Source: Dendrobates tinctorius (lineage: Eukaryota). From it: 64,000 nucleotides of DNA. Shown in pieces: positions 13,034 to 58,200 of this stretch (its first letter is position 1; each line of letters opens with the position of its first letter). The notes beneath the pieces were generated by a model, which was given only the letters and a program-made list of their open reading frames with translations, did not search any database and was not told the DNA's origin. The translations under genes and the position numbers were made by a program. Location of the stretch: NCBI RefSeq assembly GCF_039654945.1, contig NW_027361676.1:32736001-32800000 (forward strand). The letters are read 5' to 3'.

Positions 13034-13505
13034 TTAAAAAAGTCAGCTCGACACGCAAAAAAAAAAAAAACCCACACCCAACCCGAGATCATTAAAATAA
13101 GGAGACGCTACGGGTATCGGAAAATGGTGCAATTTTTTAATTTTTTGCTTTTTTAAACAAAGTATGGAATTTTGTTGCACCACTTAGATAAAAAAAATAA
13201 AAAAAGAACCTAGACATGTTTGGCGTCTATAAACTCGTAATGAAGAGGAGGATGAATGAACTCATGGAGATCAACATCCGACAATGCGGAGACACCATCA
13301 TGTGTTTCTCAACGCAGTGATTCTAGAGCACTGCCCCCATCCCTTATGGGAAATATGTAAAACATGCAAAACAGAAGCCGCGGAGACACCATCACGTGTT
13401 TCTCAACGCAAGCAATGACCAGCCAGGTCTTTGCCCGGGAAGGAACAACCACGGGAAGGGCAGTCTCCAATGAAGGAAACCACCTATGCCAAAACATGGT
13501 ATCCA

Positions 13506-13549
13506 TCCACATACAGCTGTTTCGGGGTATTGCCCCTCATCAGTCTGGA
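13506..13549 (-). ncRNA. Minimal type I hammerhead ribozyme (second copy, naf1 sense strand)
   Basis: Reverse complement UCCAGA-CUGAUGA-GGGGCAAUACCCC-GAAA-CAGCUG-UA-UGUGGA; one G-G mismatch in stem I. Confidence 0.88.
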
Positions 13550-13741
13550 GTAGGAAACTGGCTAGTAGGAGCAATGCCTAGTAAAAAGACTATGAGGGAT
13601 GGGGGCAGTGCTCTAGAATCACTGCGTTGAGAAACACGTGATGGTGTCTCCGCATTGTCGGATGTTGATCTCCATGAGTTCATTCATCCTCCTCTTCATA
13701 GTCTTTTTACTAGACATTGCTCCTACTAGCCAGTTTCCTAC

Positions 13742-13785
13742 TCCACACTGATGAGGGGCAATACCCCGAAACAGCTGTATGTGGA
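13742..13785 (+). ncRNA. Minimal type I hammerhead ribozyme
   Basis: UCCACA-CUGAUGA-GGGG caaua CCCC-GAAA-CAGCUG-UA^-UGUGGA: complete core, 6-bp stem I, 4-bp stem II, palindromic stem III; predicted cut after 13779. Confidence 0.92.
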
Positions 13786-14580
13786 TGGATACCATGTTTT
13801 GGCATAGGTGGTTTCCTTCATTGGAGACTGCCCTTCCCGTGGTTGTTCCTTCCTGGGCAAAGACCTGGCTGGTCATTCCTTGCGTTGAGAAACACGTGAT
13901 GGTGTCTCCGCGGCTTATATTTTGCATATAAACTCGTAATGACCTGGAGAATCATAATGGCAGGTCAGTTTTAGCATTTAGTGAACCTAAGAAAAAAGCC
14001 AAACAAGTGTGGGATTGCACTTTTTTTTTTGCAATTTCATAACCGTTTTCTGGTACACGACATGGCAAAATCAACAGTGTCATTCAAAAGTACAACTCAT
14101 CCTGCAAAAAAACAAGCCCTCACATGGCCATATTGACGGAAAAATTAAAAAAAAAAAAAAGTTATGGCTCTGGGAAGAAGGGGAGCGAAAACGAAAACAC
14201 CTCCGGGGTTAATATTTGGAAATACATGAACATCACAGCTTCTTTAGGACTTCTCAGAAATGCGTGTTGAAAGGCTGCAGTAGAGGCCAAGATTTTACAT
14301 TTTGTAATATTGACCAGACTTCGTGGAGCCGTACAGTGAATTTATCTAGTAATCCAGAGTTCACTCTGCAATATGCTGCTCGGTCAGGACAGAGTCAGGG
14401 CTTCCTCCCGAATAACTCGATTTAAACTTTCCCCTGATAAAGCAGACTACATTATTTTATCTGGCCAAAAAAACAGACCAGAAAGGGAGATGAAGTGAAG
14501 TGTAAAGTTTCATATTTTGTACTAGAGCCACAGAGACAGGGTCCCTATACAAGAACTGTGTTATTTGGCCCTCTACTTAA

Positions 14581-23814: not shown

Positions 23815-25052
23815 TCCAATGACAGACTAGTACAGAGGGGAAAGAACCCTGTCCTTGCGGACTAACACTACGGGATAATGGGGAAGAGGCAGAAGCTCAG
23901 GTGGTGGTGAGGCGGCAGAATGGGTATTGCAGGCTGTAAGTTTTCCTGAAGAGATGGGATTTCAGGTTCTGTCTGAAGGATCCAAAGGTGGTGGATAATC
24001 GGACATGTTGAGGCGTGGAATTCCAGAGGATAGGGGATATTCGGGAGAAATCTTGGAGGCGGTTGTGTGAGGAACTTATAAATGTGGAGGAGAGAAGTAG
24101 GTCTTGGGAGGATCGAAGATTACGTGAGGGAAGATAGTTGGAGTTTAGTTCAGAGATATAGGGAGGGGACAGGTTGTGGATGGCTTTGTAGGTCAGTGTT
24201 AGTAGTTTGAACTGGATTCATTGGGGAGTTGGGAGCCTGTGGAGGGATTTGCAGAGGGGAGAAACAGGAGCAGCGAGGAGAGGTGGATTAGTAGGGCAGC
24301 AGAGTTGAGGACAGACTGGAGCGGTGCAAGAGTTGGCGGGGAGGCCACAGAGGAGGGTGTTGCAGTAATCAAGACGCGAGATGATGAGGGCATGCACAAG
24401 AGTTTTAGTAGATTGAGGGCAGAGGAAGGGACGGATTCTGGAAATATTTTTGAGTTTGAGGCGACAGGAGGTGGCAAGAGTTTGGACGTGTGGTTTGAAG
24501 GACAGGGCAGAGTCGAGAGTTACTCCGAGACAGCGGATTTCAGATGCGGGAGAGAGCGTGATGCCATTTACCATAATAGATAAATCGGGTAGGGGAGATA
24601 CCCGAGATGGAGGAAAGATGAGGAATTCGGTTTTGTCTACATTGAGTTTTAGGAAGCGAGAGGTGAAGGAGAAGGATATGGCTGATAGACACTCCGGGAT
24701 TCTGGACAGCAGAGAGGTGACATAGATCTGAGTGTTGTCTGAAACAGGTCGAACTAGAAGCCATGGGACTTTAGGAGTTGTCCTAGGCCAAGAGTATAGA
24801 GTCATTAGTGATTTTGGTCAGGGCAGTTTCGGTGGAGTGGTGGTGGCAGAAGCCAGATTGAAGGTGGTCAAGGAAAGAGTTAGATGAGATGAGAGGTGGG
24901 AGGAAAAATGAGCATGGACATGCTGCTCAAGGAGTTTGGAAGCGAACGGGAACAGTGATATGGGGAGATAGCTGGGCATAGCAGTTGGGTCAAGGTTTGT
25001 TTTTTTTGAGGATGGGTGTGATGGTGGCATGTTTGAAGGCAGAGGGGAAGGT

Positions 25053-26162
25053 AAAAAAAAAAAAAAAAGGGGATCGTTCCAGCTACTAAAAAACTTGCTT
25101 TATTGAAGAAAATTTAAAATAACAGCATGTCGGCTTTCTCCTCTACAGCAAAAGGATGCGCTGGGGGGCACTAGAAACAGCTATGCGTTTCGATCCACTA
25201 TGGATCTTTTTCACAGCTGTAGATTGAGGGAGTAACACAAATCTTATACACATCAAGAGCCAATAGCAGATACACTTTCAGTCACATGATTAGACACTAA
25301 GATACTTTGCACTTTTCTCAGAGAAAATGGAGATTTGCGTTATGCTGACAGATAAAATAATTATTTCACATTAATAACAAATACAAATTAAAAAAGAAAA
25401 AATATAGAAATAACCAATTAATAATGGTACATGATTTCAGTTCTTTAATTTAGACCACTAGGATATCTGGACCCCAAGCAAAAAATCCAGAAAGCCTCCC
25501 TTGTAAGAAGACGTCTTTTTACATCTCCTCCACATTTTAAATTTTTAATGCATTCAATTCCCACTACAGACATTGCATCCAAATTACCATTGTGGTGCAT
25601 TAAAAAATGTTTTGAAGCCATAGAAATATTGCGTGTGTTTAAATTATTATTCTCTACATCCCTAATATGCTCCAAAATCACAGTTTTAAGTTTCCTTGTT
25701 GTGCATCCTATATAGAACAAATTGCATATTTCACAGTGTATTTTATAAACTACGTTTTCTGTTTTGCAATAAATTGTTTTATGTTGTAAGCTTGAACATT
25801 ATTGAGGTCACTAAATTTTTTAACCCTTTGTGTGTATCTGCACATTTTACATTTATTCTGACCACATCTGTAAAAACCTGTAGTTTTTAACCAATTATCA
25901 GTGGATTGCACTGATGGGAAAAAACCTGGAGAAATGATGTCCCCAATTGTAGGAGCATGCCTAGCTATCACATTAGTGCCAGTTTGTAATATTTTAACCA
26001 AAGTTTCGTCCTCATATAAAATTGGTAAGCACTCATAAAAACCTTCCCTGATTTTATTAAATTGAAAACTATATTCCAGACTGACGAACATTTTTTTATT
26101 TATATCCCCTCTCACTTTGTTTTTATTATTTGGTTCCAATAGACTAATTCTGTCCCTATTGA
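25053..26162 (-). mobile_element. Penelope-like (Neptune) fragment: Cys linker, GIY-YIG endonuclease and pseudo-LTR (duplicate ~29623-30732)
   Basis: GFYRCGQNKCKMC linker; FYIGCTTRKLK..EH; REAFWIFCLGSRYPSGLN. Confidence 0.88.
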
Positions 26163-27782
26163 AGTTAGTGATATGTTGAAGAGGTGGGTTAGGGATGGGT
26201 TAAGAGTGGTGGTGAGGTTGGGGAGGAGGTGGGAAGGGGGTCGAGTGCACAGGTGGTGAGGTGCGATTTGAAGATGAGAAAATTAAGCTCCCCTTCAGTG
26301 ATGTTGGAGAGTGAGGTTATGGTATTTAGGCATTGGTCTGGTATACAAAGTGGTTGTGGTGGTTGAACAATGAAGACTTGCCTTGTTTGGTCGATCTTAT
26401 TTTTGAAGTGTCTGGCAAAGTCCTCAGGAGACATGAGGGAGGTTGGAGGTGGCAGTGCTGGGTAGAGGAGGTAGTTAAAAGTTTTGAACAACTGTTTGGG
26501 GTTGTAGGATAGGCAAGATACAAGGGTTGTGAAGTAGGCCTGTTTAGCAGAGGTGAGGGAAGATTTGAAAGCGACTGTTGCCTGTCTGAATGCAGTGAAG
26601 TAGTCTTGCGAATTTGCTTTCTTCCAACGCCGCTCTGCAGCCCTGGACACTTGTCGGAGCTTTTTAGTGGTGTTACTGTGCCAGGGTTGTCTGTCGATAC
26701 GTCACACTCTGCCATGAACGAGAGGGGCGACTGCGTAAATAGCTGCTGCGAGAGTGGAATTGTAGAAAGCAGTGGCACTGTGTGTCGTGGAGTGAGGTTA
26801 TGGATGCCAGTGGAAAACAATTGCGTGTTCGCTTTGCATGTCACAGCGCTGCATTGTCTGTCCGAAACCTTCCTCCCTTTGTGTCGAATGAACTTATGGA
26901 TGCCAGTGGTAGAATAGACAAGTTGCAAGTGACCACTGTCAAAGGCGCTCAGGACACGATGTCAAAGGGTACTTTCTTTACTGCACAACGTGTTTCGACA
27001 GCCAGACACCGTGTTCATCAGGTGGCAAGCTTGGCATCTGACCATCGAAACGCATTGTGAAATAAAGAAAGCACTCTTTGACATTGTGTCCTGAGCGCTC
27101 CTTTGACCGTGGTCACTTGCAACTTGTCTTTTCTTTCCTCTCTTGAGGGCACACGGCTGGAGCTGCGGCGGATCGCTTAAACCACATAACTCCCTGTGGC
27201 CTTATCCTCAACGCTCCATGGAGACCGCAATCTCATCCTCTCTTAGGATTGTCAAAGAGCACATTATTATTTATTTTTATATAGCGACATTAATTCCATG
27301 GTGCTGTACATGAGAAGGGGTTACACACAAAGTAAGAGATACAGTTTACAGTAAACAAGCTTAAGGGTACTTCACACATAGCAAGATCGTTAGCGAGATC
27401 ACTGAAACGTCACAGGTTTTGTGACGCAACAGCGACCTCGCCACGTGTGACACATAGCGGCGACCAGCCCCCCACTGCGATATCGCTGATCGTGATCGAA
27501 TGTCCTTGTTGGTGTCCCGCTGGCCAGCATGCATAGCTGTGTTTGACGCCATAACAACGACGAGCGACCTCGTTGGCGACTCAAAACTCAGGGACGCAGG
27601 CATGATTTTGCTTGGTCTTTTCAATGCCCCCTCAACTCCGATTGGTAGTCTCAAATTAGGATCTTTCTAGCGTTTCCTTTTATAGGTCAGCTATCAATTG
27701 TATGCAATCATAACATTTAACATGTACAGTTATAATAATCGCGTGTCCCCGTATCAGTGACTGTGGAGCCACGAATAAATAA

Positions 27783-28064: not shown

Positions 28065-31000
28065 ATAAATAAGAGCACTAGCGACTCAAGACAGGGACGC
28101 TGAAGCAAACAGCGTAGTGATAGCGCAGAAGTGGCCACCAATCGGAGCAGAGGGACGTGGAAAAGGCAACGCTGAAGCATGCCTATCGAGGTCTGAGTCG
28201 TCAGAATAGCTGCTGTGTGACAAGGTCCCAACGACCGCCGAGGTCGTTATACGGATCGCCGTATCGTTGCGTAGATCTGCCTGTTTGACAGCTTACTAGT
28301 GACCATGTAGCGACATACCAGCGATCCTTACCAGGTCGTATCATTGTCGGGAGCGCTGGAGCGTCGCTATGTGTAACCGCACCCTTCCAATGACAGACTA
28401 GTACAGAGGGGAAAGAACCCTGTCCTTGCGGACTAACACTACGGGATAATGGGGAAGAGGCAGAAGCTCAGGTGGTGGTGAGGCGGCAGAATGGGTATTG
28501 CAGGCTGTAAGTTTTCCTGAAGAGATGGGATTTCAGGTTCTGTCTGAAGGATCCAAAGGTGGTGGATAATCGGACATGTTGAGGCGTGGAATTCCAGAGG
28601 ATAGGGGATATTCGGGAGAAATCTTGGAGGCGGTTGTGTGAGGAACTTATAAATGTGGAGGAGAGTAGTAGGTCTTGGGAGGATCGAAGATTACGTGAGG
28701 GAAGATAGTTGGAGTTTAGTTCAGAGATATAGGGAGGGGACAGGTTGTGGATGGCTTTGTAGGTCAGTGTTAGTAGTTTGAACTGGATTCATTGGGGAGT
28801 TGGGAGCCTGTGGAGGGATTTGCAGAGGGGAGAAACAGGAGCAGCGAGGAGAGGTGGATTAGTAGGGCAGCAGAGTTGAGGACAGACTGGAGCGGTGAAA
28901 GAGTTGGCGGGGAGGCCACAGAGGAGGGTGTTGCAGTAATCAAGACGCGAGATGATGAGGGCATGCACAAGAGTTTTAGTAGATTGAGGGCAGAGGAAGG
29001 GACGGATTCTGGAAATATTTTTGAGTTTGAGGCGACAGGAGGTGGCAAGAGTTTGGACGTGTGGTTTGAAGGACAGGGCAGAGTCGAGAGTTACTCCGAG
29101 ACAGCGGATTTCAGATGCGGGAGAGAGCGTGATGCCATTTACCATAATAGATAAATCGGGTAGGGGAGATACCCGAGATGGAGGAAAGATGAGGAATTTG
29201 GTTTTGTCTACATTGAGTTTTAGGAAGCGAGAGGTGAAGGAGAAGGATATGGCTGATAGACACTCCGGGATTCTGGACAGCAGAGAGGTGACATAGATCT
29301 GAGTGTTGTCTGAAACAGGTCGAACTAGAAGCCATGGGACTTTAGGAGTTGTCCTAGGCCAAGAGTATAGAGTCATTAGTGATTTTGGTCAGGGCAGTTT
29401 CGGTGGAGTGGTGGTGACAGAAGCCAGATTGAAGGTGGTCAAGGAAAGAGTTAGATGAGATGAGAGGTGGGAGGAAAAATGAGCATGGACATGCTGCTCA
29501 AGGAGTTTGGAAGCGAACGGGAACAGTGATATGGGGAGATAGCTGGGCATAGCAGTTGGGTCAAGGTTTGTTTTTTTGAGGATGGGTGTGATGGTGGCAT
29601 GTTTGAAGGCAGAGGGGAAGGTAAAAAAAAAAAAAAAAAGGGGATCGTTCCAGCTACTAAAAAACTTGCTTTATTGAAGAAAATTTAAAATAACAGCATG
29701 TCGGCTTTCTCCTCTACAGCAAAAGGATGCGCTGGGGGGCACTAGAAACAGCTACGCGTTTCGATCCACTATGGATCTTTTTCACAGCTGTAGATTGAGG
29801 GAGTAACACAAATCTTATACACATCAAGAGCCAATAGCAGATACACTTTCAGTCACATGATTAGACACTAAGATACTTTGCACTTTTCTCAGAGAAAATG
29901 GAGATTTGCGTTATGCTGACAGATAAAATAATTATTTCACATTAATAACAAATACAAATTAAAAAAGAAAAAATATAGAAATAACCAATTAATAATGGTA
30001 CATGATTTCAGTTCTTTAATTTAGACCACTAGGATATCTGGACCCCAAGCAAAAAATCCAGAAAGCCTCCCTTGTAAGAAGACGTCTTTTTACATCTCCT
30101 CCACATTTTAAATTTTTAATGCATTCAATTCCCACTACAGACATTGCATCCAAATTACCATTGTGGTGCATTAAAAATGTTTTGAAGCCATAGAAATATT
30201 GCGTGTGTTTAAATTATTATTCTCTACATCCCTAATATGCTCCAAAATCACAGTTTTAAGTTTCCTTGTTGTGCATCCTATATAGAACAAATTGCATATT
30301 TCACAGTGTATTTTATAAACTACGTTTTCTGTTTTGCAATAAATTGTTTTATGTTGTAAGCTTGAACATTATTGAGGTCACTAAATTTTTTAACCCTTTG
30401 TGTGTATCTGCACATTTTACATTTATTCTGACCACATCTGTAAAAACCTGTAGTTTTTAACCAATTATCAGTGGATTGCACTGATGGGAAAAAACCTGGA
30501 GAAATGATGTCCCCAATTGTAGGAGCATGCCTAGCTATCACATTAGTGCCAGTTTGTAATATTTTAACCAAAGTTTCGTCCTCATATAAAATTGGTAAGC
30601 ACTCATAAAAACCTTCCCTGATTTTATTAAATTGAAAACTATATTCCAGACTGACAAACATTTTTTTATTTAAATCCCCTCTCACTTTGTTTTTATTATT
30701 TGGTTCCAATAGACTAATTCTGTCCCTATTGAAGTTAGTGATATGTTGAAGAGGTGGGTTAGGGATGGGTTAAGAGTGGTGGTGAGGTTGGGGAGGAGGT
30801 GGGAAGGGGGTCGAGTGCACAGGTGGTGAGGTGCGATTTGAAGATGAGAAAATTAAGCTCCCCTTCAGTGATGTTGGAGAGTGAGGTTATGGTATTTAGG
30901 CATTGGTCTGGTATACAAAGTGGTTGTGGTGGTTGAACAATGAAGACTTGCCTTGTTTGGTCGATCTTATTTTTGAAGTGTCTGGCAAAGTCCTCAGGAG

Positions 31001-31488
31001 ACATGAGGGAGGTTGGAAGTGGCAGTGCTGGGTAGAGGAGGTAGTTAAAAGTTTTGAACAACTGTTTGGGGTTGTAGGATAGGCAAGATACAAGGGTTGT
31101 GAAGTAGGCCTGTTTAGCAGAGGTGAGGGAAGATTTGAAAGCGACTGTTGCCTGTCTGAATGCAGTGAAGTAGTCTTGCGAATTTGCTTTCTTCCAACGC
31201 CGCTCTGCAGCCCTGGACACTTGTCGGAGCTTTTTAGTGGTGTTACTGTGCCAGGGTTGTCTGTCAATACGTCACACTCTGCCATGAACGAGAGGGGCGA
31301 CTGCGTAAATAGCTGCTGCGAGAGTGGAATTGTAGAAAGCAGTGGCACTGTGTGTCGTGGAGTGAGGTTATGGATGCCAGTGGAAAACAATTGCGTGTTC
31401 GCTTTGCATGTCACAGCGCTGCATTGTCTGTCCGAAACCTTCCTCCCTTTGTGTCGAATGAACTTATGGATGCCAGTGGTAGAATAGA

Positions 31489-31814
31489 CAAGTTGCAAGT
31501 GACCACTGTCAAAGGCGCTCAGGACACGATGTCAAAGGGTACTTTCTTTACTGCACAACGTGTTTCGACAGCCAGACACCGTGTTCATCAGGTGGCAAGC
31601 TTGGCATCTGACCATCGAAACGCATTGTGAAATAAAGAAAGCACTCTTTGACATTGTGTCCTGAGCGCTCCTTTGACCGTGGTCACTTGCAACTTGTCTT
31701 TTCTTTCCTCTCTTGAGGGCACACGGCTGGAGCTCCAGCGGATCGCTTAAACCACATAACTCCCTGTGGCCTTATCCTCAACGCTCCATGGAGACCGCAA
31801 TCTCATCCTCTCTT
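31489..31814. mobile_element. Fold-back Penelope-type non-autonomous insert with degenerate hammerhead (duplicate ~26919-27244)
   Basis: TSD AGTGGT(A/G)GAATAGA (31475-31488 and 31815-31828); ~80-bp inverted arms; minus strand CAC-CTGATGA...GAAACACGTT-GTG. Confidence 0.75.
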
Positions 31815-37904: not shown

Positions 37905-39125
37905 CACTCACTGGCCACTTTATTAGGTACACCTGTCCAACTGTGTGTTAAGACTTAATTTCTAATCAGCCAATCACATGGCGGCAACTCAGTGCATTTA
38001 GGCATGTAGACATGGTCAAGACAATCTCCTGCAGTTCAAACCGAGCATCAGTATGGGGAAGAAAGGTGATTTGAGTGCCTTTGAACGTGGCATGATTGTT
38101 GGTGCCAGAAGGGCTGGTCTGAGAATTTCAGAAACTGCTGATCTACTGGGATTTTCACGCACAACCATCTCTAGGGTTTACAGAGAATGGTCCGAAAAAG
38201 AAAAAAAATCCAGTGAGCGGCAGTTCTGTGGCCGGAAATGCCATGTTGATGCCAGAGGTCAGAGGAGAATGGGCAGACTGGTTCGAGCTGATAGAAAGGC
38301 AACAGTGACTCAAATTGCCACCCGTTACAACCAAGGTAGGCAGAAGAGCATCTCTGAACGCACAGTGCGTCGAACTTTGAGGCAGATGGGCTACAGCAGC
38401 AGAAGACCACACTGGGTACCACTCCTCTCAGCTAAGAACAGGAAACTGAGGCTACAATTTGCACAAGCTCATCGAAATTGGACAGTAGAAGATTGGAAAA
38501 ACGTTCCCTGGTCTGATGAGTCTCGATTTCTGCTGCGACATTCGGATGGTAGGGTCAGAATTTGGCGTAAACAACATGAAAGCATGGATCCATCCTGCCT
38601 TGTATCAACGGTTCAGGCTGGTGGTGGTGGTGTCATGGTGTGGGGAATTTTTTCTGGGCACTCTTTGGGCCCCTTGGTACCAATTGAGCATCGTTGCAAC
38701 GCCACAGCCTACCTGAGTATTGTTGCTGACCATGTCCATCCCTTTATGACCACAATGTACCCAACATCTGATGGCTACTTTCAGCAGGATAATGCGCCAT
38801 GTCATAAAGCTCGAATCATCTCAGATTGGTTTCTTGAACATGACAATGAGTTTACTGTACTCAAATGGCCTCCTCAGTCACCAGATCTCAATCCAATAGA
38901 GCATCTTTGGGATGTGGTGGAACGGGAGATTCGCATCAGGGATGTGCAGCCGACAAATCTGCGCCAACTGTGTGATGCCATCATGTCAATATGGTCCAAA
39001 ATCTCTGAGGAATGCTTCCAGCACCTTGTTGAATCTCTGCCACGAAGAATTGAGGCAGTTCTGAAGGCAAAAGGGGGTCCAACCCCTTACTAGCATGGTG
39101 TACCTAATAAAGTGGCCAGTGAGTG
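37905..39125 (+). mobile_element. Full-length 1221-bp DD36E (Incomer-type) Tc1/mariner transposon
   Basis: Perfect 29-bp TIR CACTCACTGGCCACTTTATTAGGTACACC; TA on both sides. Confidence 0.97.
38053..39093 (+). CDS. DD36E transposase, uninterrupted 346-aa ORF
   Basis: HTH N-terminus, [17 protein letters not shown]; 36 residues counted between the second D and E. Confidence 0.95.
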
Positions 39126-45820: not shown

Positions 45821-46715
45821 TCAGGTCCGGCGCCTGCGCACTGCAGAATTCAGCTCTGCCCTCAAAAGGGCAGAGCAGTGCAATTGCGCCACAGCCATTA
45901 CAGGACGGGAGAAGAGGACGTCATCGCATGAAGGGAGGCGTCGGACCGGACCGCAACACCCAACGGACCGGACCGCCCACCCCGGTGAGTATAATCTAAC
46001 TCGTTTTTCTTATCTTTCAGGTTACATCGGAGGCTTATCTACAGCATTACAGAATGCTGTAGATAAGCCCCCGATGTCTATGCCGGCAGCTGCAAGCCAA
46101 AAAAAAGGGTGACAGACTCCCTTTAATATGACAGCGGCATTTAACTTGCGCTTACATAAAGAAACACTAATCCTGGCCATTGGTGACCCCGTAACATGAT
46201 CGCAGGTCACCGACGGGTCGGCATGACAACCAGATGTCTGCAGCAGACCTCTGTGGTTGTCATTGCCAGATTGCTATGAGTGCCACCCGTGGTCGGTGCT
46301 CATAGCAAGAGTGCATTTATGCTACACACAGGCGATCTGATCGTCACTTGTTTGTAGCAGAGGCGATCAAAGTACCAATCTAAAATCATCAAAAAAGTAT
46401 CAAATCGTCCAAAAAATATAAAAAAAAAAAAAATCACTAACCCAATCGCTAAATGGTGTAACAAGAAAAAAAATGTAAAAGTGACAGTTATGTTTTTTTG
46501 GTCGCCGCTACATTGCAATAAGATGCAATAATGGGCGATCAAAACATTGTATCTCCACCAAAATTCTATTAAATAAAAATGTCAGCTAGGCGCACAAAAA
46601 AAAAAATAAGCCCTCACCCAGACCCAGATCACAAAAAATGCGTTTTTTTGTTTTGTTGTTTTTTTAAACAAATTTTGCATTTTTTCTTTTACCACTTAAG
46701 AGAAAAGAACCTATG

Positions 46716-47755: not shown

Positions 47756-49929
47756 TTTGGGAGTACAAATTTATGACGAACTTTGACACTCTCAGTGCTG
47801 GAATGAATGTGTCGCATGGATTTATGTCTTTTTACATCAATTAAGGAATTTCCTTTTAAAACCTTGTGGGGGCCTCACAACACAGAACTAGCCCCCAATC
47901 AGAGGACCATAAAACATCCGGACTCCTTATCTATGAACTGGTCCAATGTTTATATTTATGTTTCTCCCTCTCCCATATTGATAGTTCTGCTTCACGTCAC
48001 TTGTCTTATCTATTGCATTTTTTCTAGGCTGTATTGTGCATAAATATGTGACTCTTCAGATTTTGTATTAGTCTAGCCTGATGAAGAGACCTGAGTAGTC
48101 TCGAAAGCTTGCAATGTGTTACCATCTTTTCAGTTAGCCATTAAAAGGTATCAACTACTGAGGACTCTCAATCCTGAATATTTTTCTATCTACTGGCCAA
48201 CACGGTACAAAGATATACCTCTTTCCTGTACTCCCAAACTCGTCTCTCTCTCTGAGAATTGAAGTTACCTTTCAATACCAGTAATTTCATATCCACGTTG
48301 CTGTGATCAGGGATACAGAAATGTTTTGCCACAGGTAGATCCATTCTTTTTTCTCTTATTGTGTGATGATGAGCATTCATCCTTGTTCTAAGCTTTTGCC
48401 ATGTCTCCCCCACATACAGACCCCCAGTTGGACATTTAGTACAAATAATTAAGTACACCACATTAGATGTAATGCAGGTGAAAGTACCTGGGATCTTGTA
48501 GTCCTGATGTGAGTTGGGGATCTTTATCTTGTCCGTGGTCATTATAAATGGACAGGTTTTACATTTTTTCTGGTTGCAAGGAAAGGTTCCTGCAGCTGTT
48601 GGAGAGGACAGGGAGCTTCTGACAATGATGCTTCTTAAATTTGGGGGCTGCCTAAAACACAGCAGTGGGGGGTCTGAAAAAATGGATTTTAATCGGGCAT
48701 CTTTTTGTAGTAAAGGTTGTAATTTCCGTGCCGCTCCCCTTAGCACCTCCAGATTTGGGTTGTAGGTGACTACTAGAGGCACTCTGTTATTTTCTTCTTT
48801 AGCTTTGTAATGTAGCAGGTGATTCCTTGACAATCTGGTGGCTCTTGTAATTTGGTTTTCAATTGTTGTTGGATGGTAACCCTGATTCAAAAAGGTCTTT
48901 TTGAGCCGACCAAGGTGTTTGTCTCTATCCATGGGGTTGGAACATATACGATTGTATCTGATGGCTTGGCTATAGATAATAGAGTTCTTTTTGTGTTTTG
49001 GATGAAAACTGTCCCATTTAAGGTATGTTGGACGGTCAATTGGCTTCTGATACAGGGATGTCTCTATTTCATTGTTTTTTAGCTTAATGATGGTGTCCAA
49101 AAAATTAATCTCAGTCCTGGAGTAGTTGAGTGTTAAATTGATGGTGGGATGAAATTGATTAAACTGTTCGTGGAACGTCTTTAGCTGTTGCTCAGACTCC
49201 GTCCAGATGATTAAAATATCATCAATGAAGCAGTAGTAGGCCAGGGGCCTGATGGGGCATGATAAGCTTGGCCATGAAAAGATTTGCATACTGTGGAGCC
49301 ATTTTACTTCCCATAGCTGTGCCAGTCTCCTGTAGATAGATCCTGTTGTCAAATTCAAAGTAATTGTGGGTGAGGATGAATTTTAAAAGTTTCACCACAG
49401 CATCAGAATCAGTCCCTGTGTTTTCCATGAAGAATTTGCAGGCATTTAAACCATCTTGGTGTGGGATATTAGAGTACAAAGATTCCACATCCATGGTGGC
49501 CAGGATGGTTCCTTCTGTTAGAGGACCTATTGCTGCTAGTTTATTCAATAGGTCAGTTGTGTCCTGAATGTAGTTGGATGTATCCTTCACCAGTGGTTTA
49601 AGAATACCCTCTACCCATCCAGATACCTGCTTAGTGAGGGTGCCCACACATGAAATAATTGGTCTTCCTGGATTTCCAGATTTGTGGATTTTGGGAAGCA
49701 TGTAGAATGTCCCTATTCTTGGAGTCTCTGGTATCAGGTCATCGCCAGCTCTTATGGACTGGTCAGGCAGACAAGAAACCAACTTGTTTAGTTCCTTGTA
49801 ATAGTCCTGTGTAGGATCCGACTCCAATTTTCTATAGTAGCGTGTGTCCATAAGTTGCCTGTTTGCTTCCTTCATGTAGTCTGACGTATTCATCATGACT
49901 ATTGCACCTCCCTTGTCAGCAAGGTTTTT
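47756..49929 (-). mobile_element. Penelope-like element (Neptune clade), 5'-truncated RT + GIY-YIG, with inverted 3' pseudo-LTR
   Basis: ADKGGA, YMLPKIHK, GRPIIS, TMDVESLY, GTAMGS, FIDD, CNQKKCKTC, VVYLI..YVGET; frameshifting deletion at ~49262. The last codons (VWEYKFMTNF..GMN..YIN*) and the pLTR are on the + strand at 47756-48225. Confidence 0.95.
48074..48114 (+). ncRNA. Minimal hammerhead motif in the Penelope pseudo-LTR
   Basis: GC-CUGAUGA-A-GAGAC cugagua GUCUC-GAAAGCUU-GC; palindromic AAGCUU helix III; very short stem I. Confidence 0.75.
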
Positions 49930-55243: not shown

Positions 55244-58200
55244 CAGGGTGGATAAAAATCAATGTTTTTTTTAAAAAAATCGGATTTTTTTTTATTTAAA
55301 TCGGATGATTTTTTTCAATAAACTGCTTTTTGAGGAAAATATTTTACCATCCAAAGGTTCTTCCATCATGAGATAAAGCTGAGTTGTTTAACTCAGTAGA
55401 ATTAAGGCTGTATATGTGTAACATTCACAATGCCATGCTCTTCCAGAGGTTTCTGTAGGATTAGTGGGCAGTTTCTCTCCTATATTATCACAGACGCTCG
55501 CTTTACTTACGCAGTTCTCAAAACTGAATTTGACTCCGCAGAGGTCCCAGCCTCTTCTTCACGGCAAAAATGTTACAACATGAACAGAGGTGAGAAAAAG
55601 ACCTTAATCCTATTGTTCTACAAACCTATGAATACAGAATCAACCCCTTTAGTGCCAAGTCCAAGAAGTTAGACAATATGTTTCTGATTGTTTGGAGTGG
55701 AATAGATCTGCACAACACAAGAAGAATGTGAATCTAAGTGTGAGGAGGAGGAAGGGCAAGCAGACAAGAAAATGAAAGTGAAACTTTGAGCACAATACTG
55801 CAGCATAGCCACAGACAGACAAGTCTGGATCTGTTTGTGTGTACGATCTGAGGTTTATTACATTCTTTCCTTATAATGGCAGCAGGCCGTAAAAGAGACC
55901 CAGTTTGGGAATATTTTAATGAAGCTCCTTCGCCTATCGGTAAGGCAGGCATGCGTGAAAAATGCAAACGATGCAACAAAGAGATGCAAGGCCTGGTGGC
56001 GCGAATGAGGCAACATCATGAGAAGTGCGGTGATGAAGATGACCAAAGAAACACTTCTGAACAGGCAGGATCTTCAGGTTGGTAAACATTTTTATTGAAT
56101 CCTATTTCTAAAGACTGAACTGTCATGTGTGAGAAAAATTATATTTCTTATTATTACTGCATGTTACTGTCATTTGGTACAGTTATGAAGAAAAACAAAT
56201 ATTCCTTTTGGGGCAGGGGCAGTGATGTGTTGTGTACAATAAGCAGAAATTGTATAAACAATAAAATAACAGCATTGACTTTTTTTGCTTAGGGGAATAC
56301 ATGGATTCTGGAAACTATCCACCTCCAAGATCACCATCATCCTGTTCTACAGTTTCAGAGTTATCCATCCAGGATAGTGCTTCATTAGCAGCAGCATCAT
56401 CATCAGACACCCACAGCCACATATCACCATCACCCAAAAGGAAGATAAAAACCTTTACCTCCTGGAACCACCATAGATAGGTTTGTGATAAGAACTAGCA
56501 GATTAGAAAAAGAGTTGATTGATGAAAAAATTGCCCAGTTTATTTATGCAACGAACTCTTCTTTCCGTCTGACTGAGAACCCACATTTCATTAATATGGT
56601 TCAGTCACTGAGACCAGGATACAGTCCACCCAGCAGAGCTGATGTTGCAGGGAAACTGCTGGATCAAGTGTATGACAGAGAAATGGAGCAATGTGCAACA
56701 GCTCTGGAGGGTAAAATTGTTAACCTAAGTATTGATGGGTGGAGTAAAGTCCACAATGATCCTATTGTATGTGCTTGTATAACAACAGAAGGTGGTAAAG
56801 TCTTCCTTGCACAAACAACTGATACGTCAGGAAATGCACACACAGCAGAATACTTACAAGAAGTGGCAGTAAAAGCTATAACGACATGTGAACAAAAATT
56901 CAAATGTCTAGTACGCATTTTGGTCACTGACAATGCTGCAAACGTATCCAAGATGAGAAGAGATTTAGAAGAGCAGGGAGGGAATACAAAGCTGCTAATA
57001 ACATATGGTTGCAGTGCTCATTTGCTGCACCTCTTAGCCAAAGACTTAAGTGTTCCAGAAATAAAGGCTAATGTTGTTGAAATTGCTAAATACTTCCGTA
57101 ATAATCATTTTGCTGCAGCAGCTCTGAAAAGGATGGGTGGAACCAAGCCAACGCTCCCACAAGATGTTAGATGGAACTCTGTGGTGGACTGTTTTGAGCA
57201 GTATATCAAAAACTGGCCTATTCTGATGACACTTTGTGAAGAAAATCGAGATAAAATAGATGGCACTGTCACGGCCAAAATCCTCAACATTGGGCTTAAG
57301 AGAAATGTTGAACATATGCTGAGCTTCCTGAAACCCATCTCTCAAGCTTTAAACAAAATACAGAAAAATAGCTGTTTTATTGCGGATGCTGTTGAAATTT
57401 GGAAGGAACTGAGTGAACACTTAAAAACAGAACTACACATGGACAGAATTAAATTACAAGCAGTAAACAAACGAATGGGACAAGCACTGACTCCAGCTCA
57501 TTTTTTGGCAAATATTGTCAATATCCAATATCAGGGTCAAAACCTAAGTGCTGAGGAAGAGGAGTTAGCTATGACATGGGTATCCAGCAATCATCCATCC
57601 ATCTTTAATGCCAACTATAATAAACTTCAGAGCTAAGGGGGAACCATTCAAGAAATATATGTTTGCTGAAGATATTTTAAGGAAGGTCACACCAGTAAAC
57701 TGGTGGAAGTCACTTAAGCGCTTGGATTTAGAGACTGTTCAAGTAATGATTTCACTTTTAACAGCAGTAGCTTCTTCTGCAGGCGTTGAAAGAATATTCT
57801 CTTCCTTTGGACTCATTCATTCTAAATTGAGAAATCGGTTGGGACCCAATAAAGCAGGAAAGCTTGTTTTTCTTTTCCAGATTATGAATAGGAACAAAGA
57901 AGAAGATGATGATGATGATGAAGATGACGACGACAAGTGAGCTACAGAGGACAGCAGGGACAGTAGTATTTAAGTTTTTCATGTGTCGGCTGGGCTGACA
58001 GTCTAAGTTTCTTAAAATATATATATATTTTGTTTAGCCAAATTAGTTAACAAACATGGATGTTTGTTTAAGCAAATAACTTATGCTGTAATGTTGTTAT
58101 TGTTTCAGTTGAATAAATCTATTTAAATTGTTATTAAGGTCAGGATTATTTTTCTCCTTCCTAAGTACAACAGAACAGTGGTGTCCAAATATGAATGATT

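Follow-up and report, generated by a model that had tools for sequence, protein, structure and literature searches.

An inverted, two-armed copy of a high-copy frog retrozyme in Dendrobates tinctorius, with probable insertion by Penelope-like machinery

The stretch of DNA analysed here (64,000 nt, referred to below as the window) contains, between positions 13228 and 13942, what is most probably a frog non-LTR retrozyme of a high-copy family, here as a dead-end copy introduced into another repeat in one event by Penelope-like machinery which primed from both nicks. This reading is based on the anatomy of the insert, its target site duplication (TSD), the empty site, the copy number and tandem arrangement of the family and the ribozyme motif, from which the enzyme, the order of the steps and the form of the template were inferred.

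Anatomy of the insert

The 16-mer TATAAACTCGTAATGA (AT content 75%) was found as two direct repeats, identical at 16/16 positions, which abut a block of inverted repeats and have 683 nt between them. The following features were identified:

13228-13243: left TSD, TATAAACTCGTAATGA; direct repeat, empty-site contigs leave after 13243
13244-13595, minus strand: left arm, one 352-nt unit, with its 5' end at 13595 and its 3' end abutting the left TSD
13592-13595: central head-to-head junction ATGA; end of the left-arm cDNA
13596-13927, plus strand: right arm, 332 nt (336 nt with ATGA), unit positions 253-352 followed by 1-232, with its 3' end abutting the right TSD
13927-13942: right TSD
13623-13653 (plus), 13881-13911 (plus), 13286-13316 (minus) and 13380-13410 (minus): copies of a 31-nt hairpin motif

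Two inverted pairings make up the block, namely 13364-13595 with 13696-13927 (232 nt, 97%) and 13240-13347 with 13592-13699 (108 nt, 98%). Read on the minus strand from 13595 to 13244, the left arm is exactly one unit of 352 nt (GC content 48.6%). When the left arm was doubled, the right arm aligned to its positions 249-584 without gaps over 336 nt (97.6%, 8 mismatches), and the two arms are therefore circular permutations or, equally, multimer sub-strings, of one 352-nt unit. The sole part missing from the right arm is a 16-nt segment, X, corresponding to unit positions 233-248. No credible ORF was found in the insert; the two longest, both antisense, have 102 and 88 aa, and the former, which was the one scanned, had no Pfam match. 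The preliminary description of this DNA had listed the 16-bp repeats, an exact monomer on the left, a right arm lacking X only and the lack of a credible ORF, and on all four points it was correct.

The outer 3' ends of the arms lie at the TSDs and the 5' ends at the centre. Since the outer 3' ends fall at different unit positions, 352 in the left arm and 232 in the right, 120 nt apart, a simple fold-back is ruled out, and the earlier proposal of two separate priming events, opposite in direction, is upheld. The microhomologies proposed with it, ATGA and AT, were retained in part. At the left end the last four nucleotides of the TSD (ATGA) match the unit, giving a 4-nt microhomology. Unit and target have a single base in common at the right end (T, 13927), instead of AT, and the central ATGA microhomology with the right arm is imperfect because the family has ATAA at the matching right-arm position.

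Neither outer end (13244, 13927) carries a poly(A) or A-rich tail. The insert has a single TSD pair and no internal TSD, and no further copies of the 352-nt unit were detected elsewhere in the 64-kb window.

At first sight, long inverted repeats set between direct repeats recall a MITE or other fold-back DNA transposon, or an assembly artefact of palindromic form. However, the two ends of the insert do not form an inverted pair: each pairs with internal positions instead, and the arms have no mirror symmetry about the centre of the insert. A snap-back cDNA is thereby excluded, as is any MITE or fold-back element. A TSD of 16 bp, as found here, is also atypical for DNA transposons. A snap-back or chimeric read is contradicted by arms that are permuted and eight substitutions apart, and both the transposon and the artefact are at odds with a family that is otherwise arranged head to tail in tandem. 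Hardly any credence can be given to an origin of this kind, and insertion of retrozyme RNA by priming from two nicks is preferred.

The 31-nt motif TGCGTTGAGAAACACGTGATGGTGTCTCCGC occurs twice per unit, the copies being 94 nt apart, and is predicted to fold into a bulged 10-bp hairpin (-10 kcal/mol). In each arm, one copy of the motif is followed downstream by the 3' end of the arm, 16 nt away in one and 42 nt in the other. That the motif might be a recognition element for the reverse transcriptase (RT) is pure speculation.

Empty site and host repeat

Public contigs from four runs (X1, X8, X15 and X17) and three organisms (A, B and C) were compared with positions 13100-13640. Contigs matching the left flank as far as 13243 read on directly into 13943-13972; 43 such contigs came from X1, 44 from X8, 3 from X15 and 10 from X17. 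On both sides the insert is flanked by another abundant repeat, in normal copies of which the 16-mer is present once; the empty site is that of paralogous copies of this host repeat. Based on the empty-site contigs and the single 16-mer in host-repeat copies, the 683 nt are a true insertion which duplicated its target. The one-event insertion of a retrozyme-type hammerhead repeat with a TSD, as originally put forward, was in this way substantiated. Within the window no empty-site paralog was found, the host-repeat copy at 45.9-46.7 kb stopping short of the insertion site.

The host repeat spans 12828-13243 and 13943-14342, with paralogs at 12383-12565 (minus strand) and 45943-46706 (plus strand). 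Its sequence includes A-rich tracts and, at 12942-12981, a perfect palindrome of 18 nt, and the family is high-copy in all three organisms.

The hammerhead ribozyme

The core CTGATGAGGGGCAATACCCCGAAAC was located at 13748-13772 (plus strand) and 13543-13519 (minus strand), with no other occurrence in the window, where none is expected by chance. All elements of a type I core (CUGAUGA, GAAA, the A15.1-U16.1 pair and then a non-G at position 17) are complete in both arms. The two motifs are:

13736-13789, plus strand: right-arm type I hammerhead, found by core scan, descriptor and folding
13502-13555, minus strand: left-arm type I hammerhead, core 13543-13519, predicted cleavage between 13512 and 13511

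The right-arm motif has type I topology, with helix I open and helices II and III closed. Helix I consists of 6 bp formed by UCCACA (13742-13747) and UGUGGA (13780-13785); it is followed by CUGAUGA at 13748-13754, a 4-bp helix II (GGGG-CAAUA-CCCC) and GAAA at 13769-13772, while helix III has only 2 bp (A-U, C-G) which close a palindromic AGCU loop. The predicted cleavage site follows A13779, between unit positions 84 and 85 (13779|13780). In the descriptor search the right-arm motif was found, once in the window, compared with 1 match in 200 shuffled windows.

The left-arm motif was not matched by the descriptor, due to a private G.G mismatch in helix I: at 13545 the left arm has a G opposite G at pair 1.2-2.2, where approximately 100% of the family depth has another base. 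Helix I of this hammerhead is thus predicted to be weakened. A full hammerhead core in each arm, as previously claimed, is indeed present, but in the left arm it is accompanied by a mismatched helix I that fails the descriptor.

No Rfam family was matched at its gathering score. The best match was Hammerhead_3 (17 and 16 bits, E-values 1.6-3.4, against a gathering score of 48.5), and motifs whose helix III is minimal are expected to score below gathering. Canonical metazoan type I hammerheads have a helix I of 6 bp, a helix II of 4 bp and a helix III of 1-2 bp with a palindromic loop of 2-4 nt, and are active as dimers (PMC4209133). Judged by its sequence, the ribozyme is of this canonical kind. 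Amphibian hammerhead motifs need dimers (PMC7761336), and by analogy the hammerhead of the unit presumably works as a dimer; in a predicted co-fold, two copies form an 8-bp intermolecular helix III, ACAGCUGU.

In exact-pattern scans no copies of the core CTGATGAGGGGCAATACCCCGAAAC or the 31-nt motif TGCGTTGAGAAACACGTGATGGTGTCTCCGC were found in metagenome contigs, nor any of the core in viral contigs. A full-text literature search with the core sequence returned no paper.

The 352-nt family

At 90% identity or more, 5,305, 3,020, 123 and 409 contigs were placed on the unit in the four runs, representing the three organisms. The summed depth on the unit is far above that of the lowest-depth flank bins (13100-13194), the bins at 13195-13243 being high-copy host repeat. 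In the DNA runs, contigs join the end of the unit to its start (13583-13587 to 13241-13251) with a diverged stretch of 3-16 nt between, which demonstrates that ORF-free head-to-tail multimers exist in the genome. With thousands of contigs and these joints, the unit is multi-copy and not single-copy. The family is thus seen in tandem arrangement, whereas the locus itself has inverted arms. A single source lineage for the two arms follows from three variants, at unit positions 163, 176 and 200, which are in the minority within the family but present in both arms.

The unit has the features of a metazoan non-LTR retrozyme: it is a small non-coding repeat within the 150-450 bp range, carries a type I hammerhead, lacks LTR, PBS and PPT, is multi-copy and occurs head to tail.

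Seven contigs in X1 and one in X15 have the hammerhead part (13498-13595) in common with the unit and then continue into different, mutually consistent sequence. This divergence at 13498 points to another repeat family with the same ribozyme module, possibly a Penelope pseudo-LTR or a sister retrozyme. In addition, 17 X1 contigs stop at unit position ~237 (13359) and go on into sequences unlike one another (agreement 0.46). This position is close to the 3' end of the right arm (232) and may be a common RT start site of the family.

Mechanism of insertion

The main copy in insertions of Penelope-like elements often has next to it a head-to-head copy that is inverted and truncated at the 5' end (Craig et al. 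2021, PMC8557442). In vitro, both DNA strands are cut and extended by the purified Penelope protein, which starts internally without homology and favours AT-rich sequence (Frangieh et al. 2024, PMC11167929), and a relationship of frog retrozymes to Penelope pseudo-LTRs has been reported (Li, Clavereau & Pollet 2026, bioRxiv 10.64898/2026.07.22.740005). The Penelope-type hallmark, an inverted 5'-truncated copy adjoining the main copy within a single TSD, is present at the locus. Because its anatomy fits published Penelope-type insertions, the locus is read as retrozyme RNA inserted by Penelope machinery, the enzyme being the inferred part.

In the proposed sequence of steps, the RT/GIY-YIG endonuclease of a Penelope-like element would nick both strands of the AT-rich target 16 bp apart, and each 3'-OH would prime reverse transcription on retrozyme RNA. 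The top strand would prime at UCAU, where the target 3' end ...GTAATGA could pair through the 4-nt microhomology, and the 352-nt copy would end in ATGA again. Priming by the bottom strand, with a 1-nt microhomology, would take place at unit position 232, which lies 120 nt upstream of the first site. The two cDNAs would then grow toward each other and be joined head to head, and fill-in would yield the 16-bp TSD. The Penelope "tail" of 30-40 bp is not evident, the two initiation sites being 120 nt apart and not 30-40, and no autonomous Penelope element with sequence in common with the unit was found in the 64-kb window.

The arrangement had previously been tentatively ascribed to twin priming. 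Twin-priming inversions of L1 were reportedly described by Ostertag and Kazazian in 2001. Under such a scheme a LINE endonuclease and RT would act on a single linear retrozyme transcript, with a second primer annealing internally, and the inverted arms with central 5' ends, the TSD and the short microhomologies at the priming sites could be accommodated; RT ORFs, of LINE or Penelope type, are also present in the window (792-2468 and 49225-49896). The locus resembles L1 twin priming in its two opposed priming events at a staggered break and in an inversion with central 5' ends. It differs in having no poly(A) or A-rich tail at the outer ends, in arms that are redundant copies of one unit, and in the enzyme class proposed here. 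The arms overlap over ~332 of the 352 unit positions and are not adjacent, non-overlapping RNA segments. Furthermore, retrozymes co-occur with Penelope and resemble its pseudo-LTRs, not LINEs (bioRxiv 10.64898/2026.07.22.740005). LINE-type twin priming is consequently improbable, and the term is better replaced by Penelope-type insertion architecture (PMC8557442, PMC11167929).

Form of the template

Both arms read through the cleavage site (84|85), which rules out a ribozyme-cleaved linear monomer as the template. The template would accordingly have been an uncleaved multimer or a ligated circle. The circular or multimeric template suggested at the outset is supported to the extent that this read-through calls for either a circle or a linear RNA of more than one unit; a circle is possible but not required, as a linear multimer suffices and head-to-tail arrays exist in genomic DNA.

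The lengths of the arms have some bearing on the choice. The left arm is exactly one turn, 352 nt from ATGA to ATGA, and the right arm 0.94 turn; an exact one-turn arm has a chance of approximately 1 in 352 per arm. The one-turn left arm is an unexplained pointer to a circular template, and is to be taken as a hint. On a 352-nt circle, a non-displacing RT would stop on meeting its own RNA:cDNA hybrid, after 352 nt. A circular template, with the left arm as the trace left by reverse transcription of a covalently closed RNA circle of 352 nt and its cDNA primed at UCAU, is a tentative proposition and less probable than not.

State of this copy

Of 336 sites compared between the arms, eight are different, two of them by CpG transitions, and the TSDs are identical. 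RT errors or different template molecules could have contributed to the differences. With this number of differences the copy need not be very young, and the earlier view that it had been "caught" in the act of insertion was abandoned.

The same differences leave time for a later rearrangement, in which a plain direct insertion, or two separate insertions, was afterwards inverted by recombination or inversion. However, undoing the inversion gives a junction of unit position 352 to unit position 253, which is not tandem and calls for an extra deletion; moreover, there is a single TSD pair with no internal TSD, and the outer ends lie exactly at the TSDs. A rearrangement of this type is highly improbable when compared with this evidence, and the inverted arms are attributed to the insertion itself.

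The locus has one hammerhead per strand and hence allows no excision of the unit and no dimeric ribozyme in cis. It is a dead end for the element and cannot serve as a source copy. A transcript of either strand is predicted to fold into a hairpin with paired arms totalling ~340 bp (-532 kcal/mol). Matches to plant miRNA precursors in Rfam, judged at the level of E-values, were rejected as spurious, since they are accounted for by the long hairpin.

Other features of the window

RT ORFs were located at 792-2468 (plus strand), adjoining masked N runs, and at 49225-49896 (minus strand) together with 48189-49358 (minus strand), with Pfam RVT_1 matches of E 3e-40 and 5e-9. No GIY-YIG domain was seen in the window ORFs scanned. 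A Tc1/mariner-type transposase ORF (HTH_Tnp_Tc3_2, DDE_3) lies at 38053-39090 (plus strand) and an ORF with DUF659 at 56485-57633 (plus strand). Regions 24218-26928 and 28789-31498 have an identical set of ORF lengths, offset by 4,571 nt, which suggests a tandem duplication of ~4.6 kb.

Relationship to known elements

Small hammerhead repeats (type I, 150-450 bp) make up the non-LTR retrozymes of metazoans (Cervera & de la Pena 2020, PMC7229834). Among frogs, 57 retrozyme families have been published for Xenopus (Li, Clavereau & Pollet 2026, bioRxiv 10.64898/2026.07.22.740005), and ~9,000 minimal hammerheads are on record for X. tropicalis (PMC4209133). Compared with these retrozymes (PMC7229834; bioRxiv 10.64898/2026.07.22.740005), the locus is likewise a small non-coding repeat of less than 50% GC with a type I hammerhead, and locus and family agree with them also in genomic head-to-tail multimers, in a TSD of more than 4 bp and in a weak helix III, as is typical of amphibians. 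The locus differs in having two inverted arms instead of a tandem arrangement, and is known here from DNA sequence. Inverted arms are not described in either of the two papers; the word "inverted" is absent from PMC7229834 and occurs once in bioRxiv 10.64898/2026.07.22.740005, within a cited title. No match above noise was obtained between the unit and the primer sequences in the supplement of the latter.

The locus is similar to Penelope-like insertions (PMC8557442, PMC11167929) in its inverted 5'-truncated copy placed head to head, the hammerhead in the repeat, a TSD of the variable and longish type, the AT-rich target and internal priming with little or no homology, but has no RT/GIY-YIG ORF and no recognisable 30-40-bp tail. 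With newt satellite 2 and Schistosoma Sm-alpha (PMC4209133, PMC7761336) the unit shares a repeat length of ~330-350 nt, a type I hammerhead and a helix III too short for monomeric cleavage, with a palindromic loop that allows dimeric action; it belongs to a different sequence family and host and is present as a dispersed retro-insertion with a TSD, not as a satellite array.

The designation "undescribed frog retrozyme family" was not sustained, frog non-LTR retrozymes being already published (bioRxiv 10.64898/2026.07.22.740005; PMC4209133). Descriptions of frog non-LTR retrozymes as a class, of this type of ribozyme and of inverted Penelope-type scars are each in print. As inverted arms are absent from both retrozyme papers, a retrozyme with a two-sided Penelope-type scar constitutes a modest addition, and the single locus is an illustrative example and not a discovery.

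Implications for retrozyme mobility

No conserved motif indicates the autonomous partner of animal retrozymes (PMC7761336), and the mechanism of their mobilisation has been called unresolved (bioRxiv 10.64898/2026.07.22.740005). The identity of the retrotransposon that moves animal retrozymes, and the role of circular RNA as the template, are stated open questions in the field. To the published phylogenetic evidence the present locus adds structural evidence, in the form of a protein-less retrozyme with a two-sided, inverted Penelope scar. If the template was in fact circular, and if arm lengths genome-wide proved to cluster at one unit, genomic evidence would be available for the first time that circular RNAs of animal retrozymes act as transposition templates and that Penelope machinery copies circular RNAs from both nicked strands.
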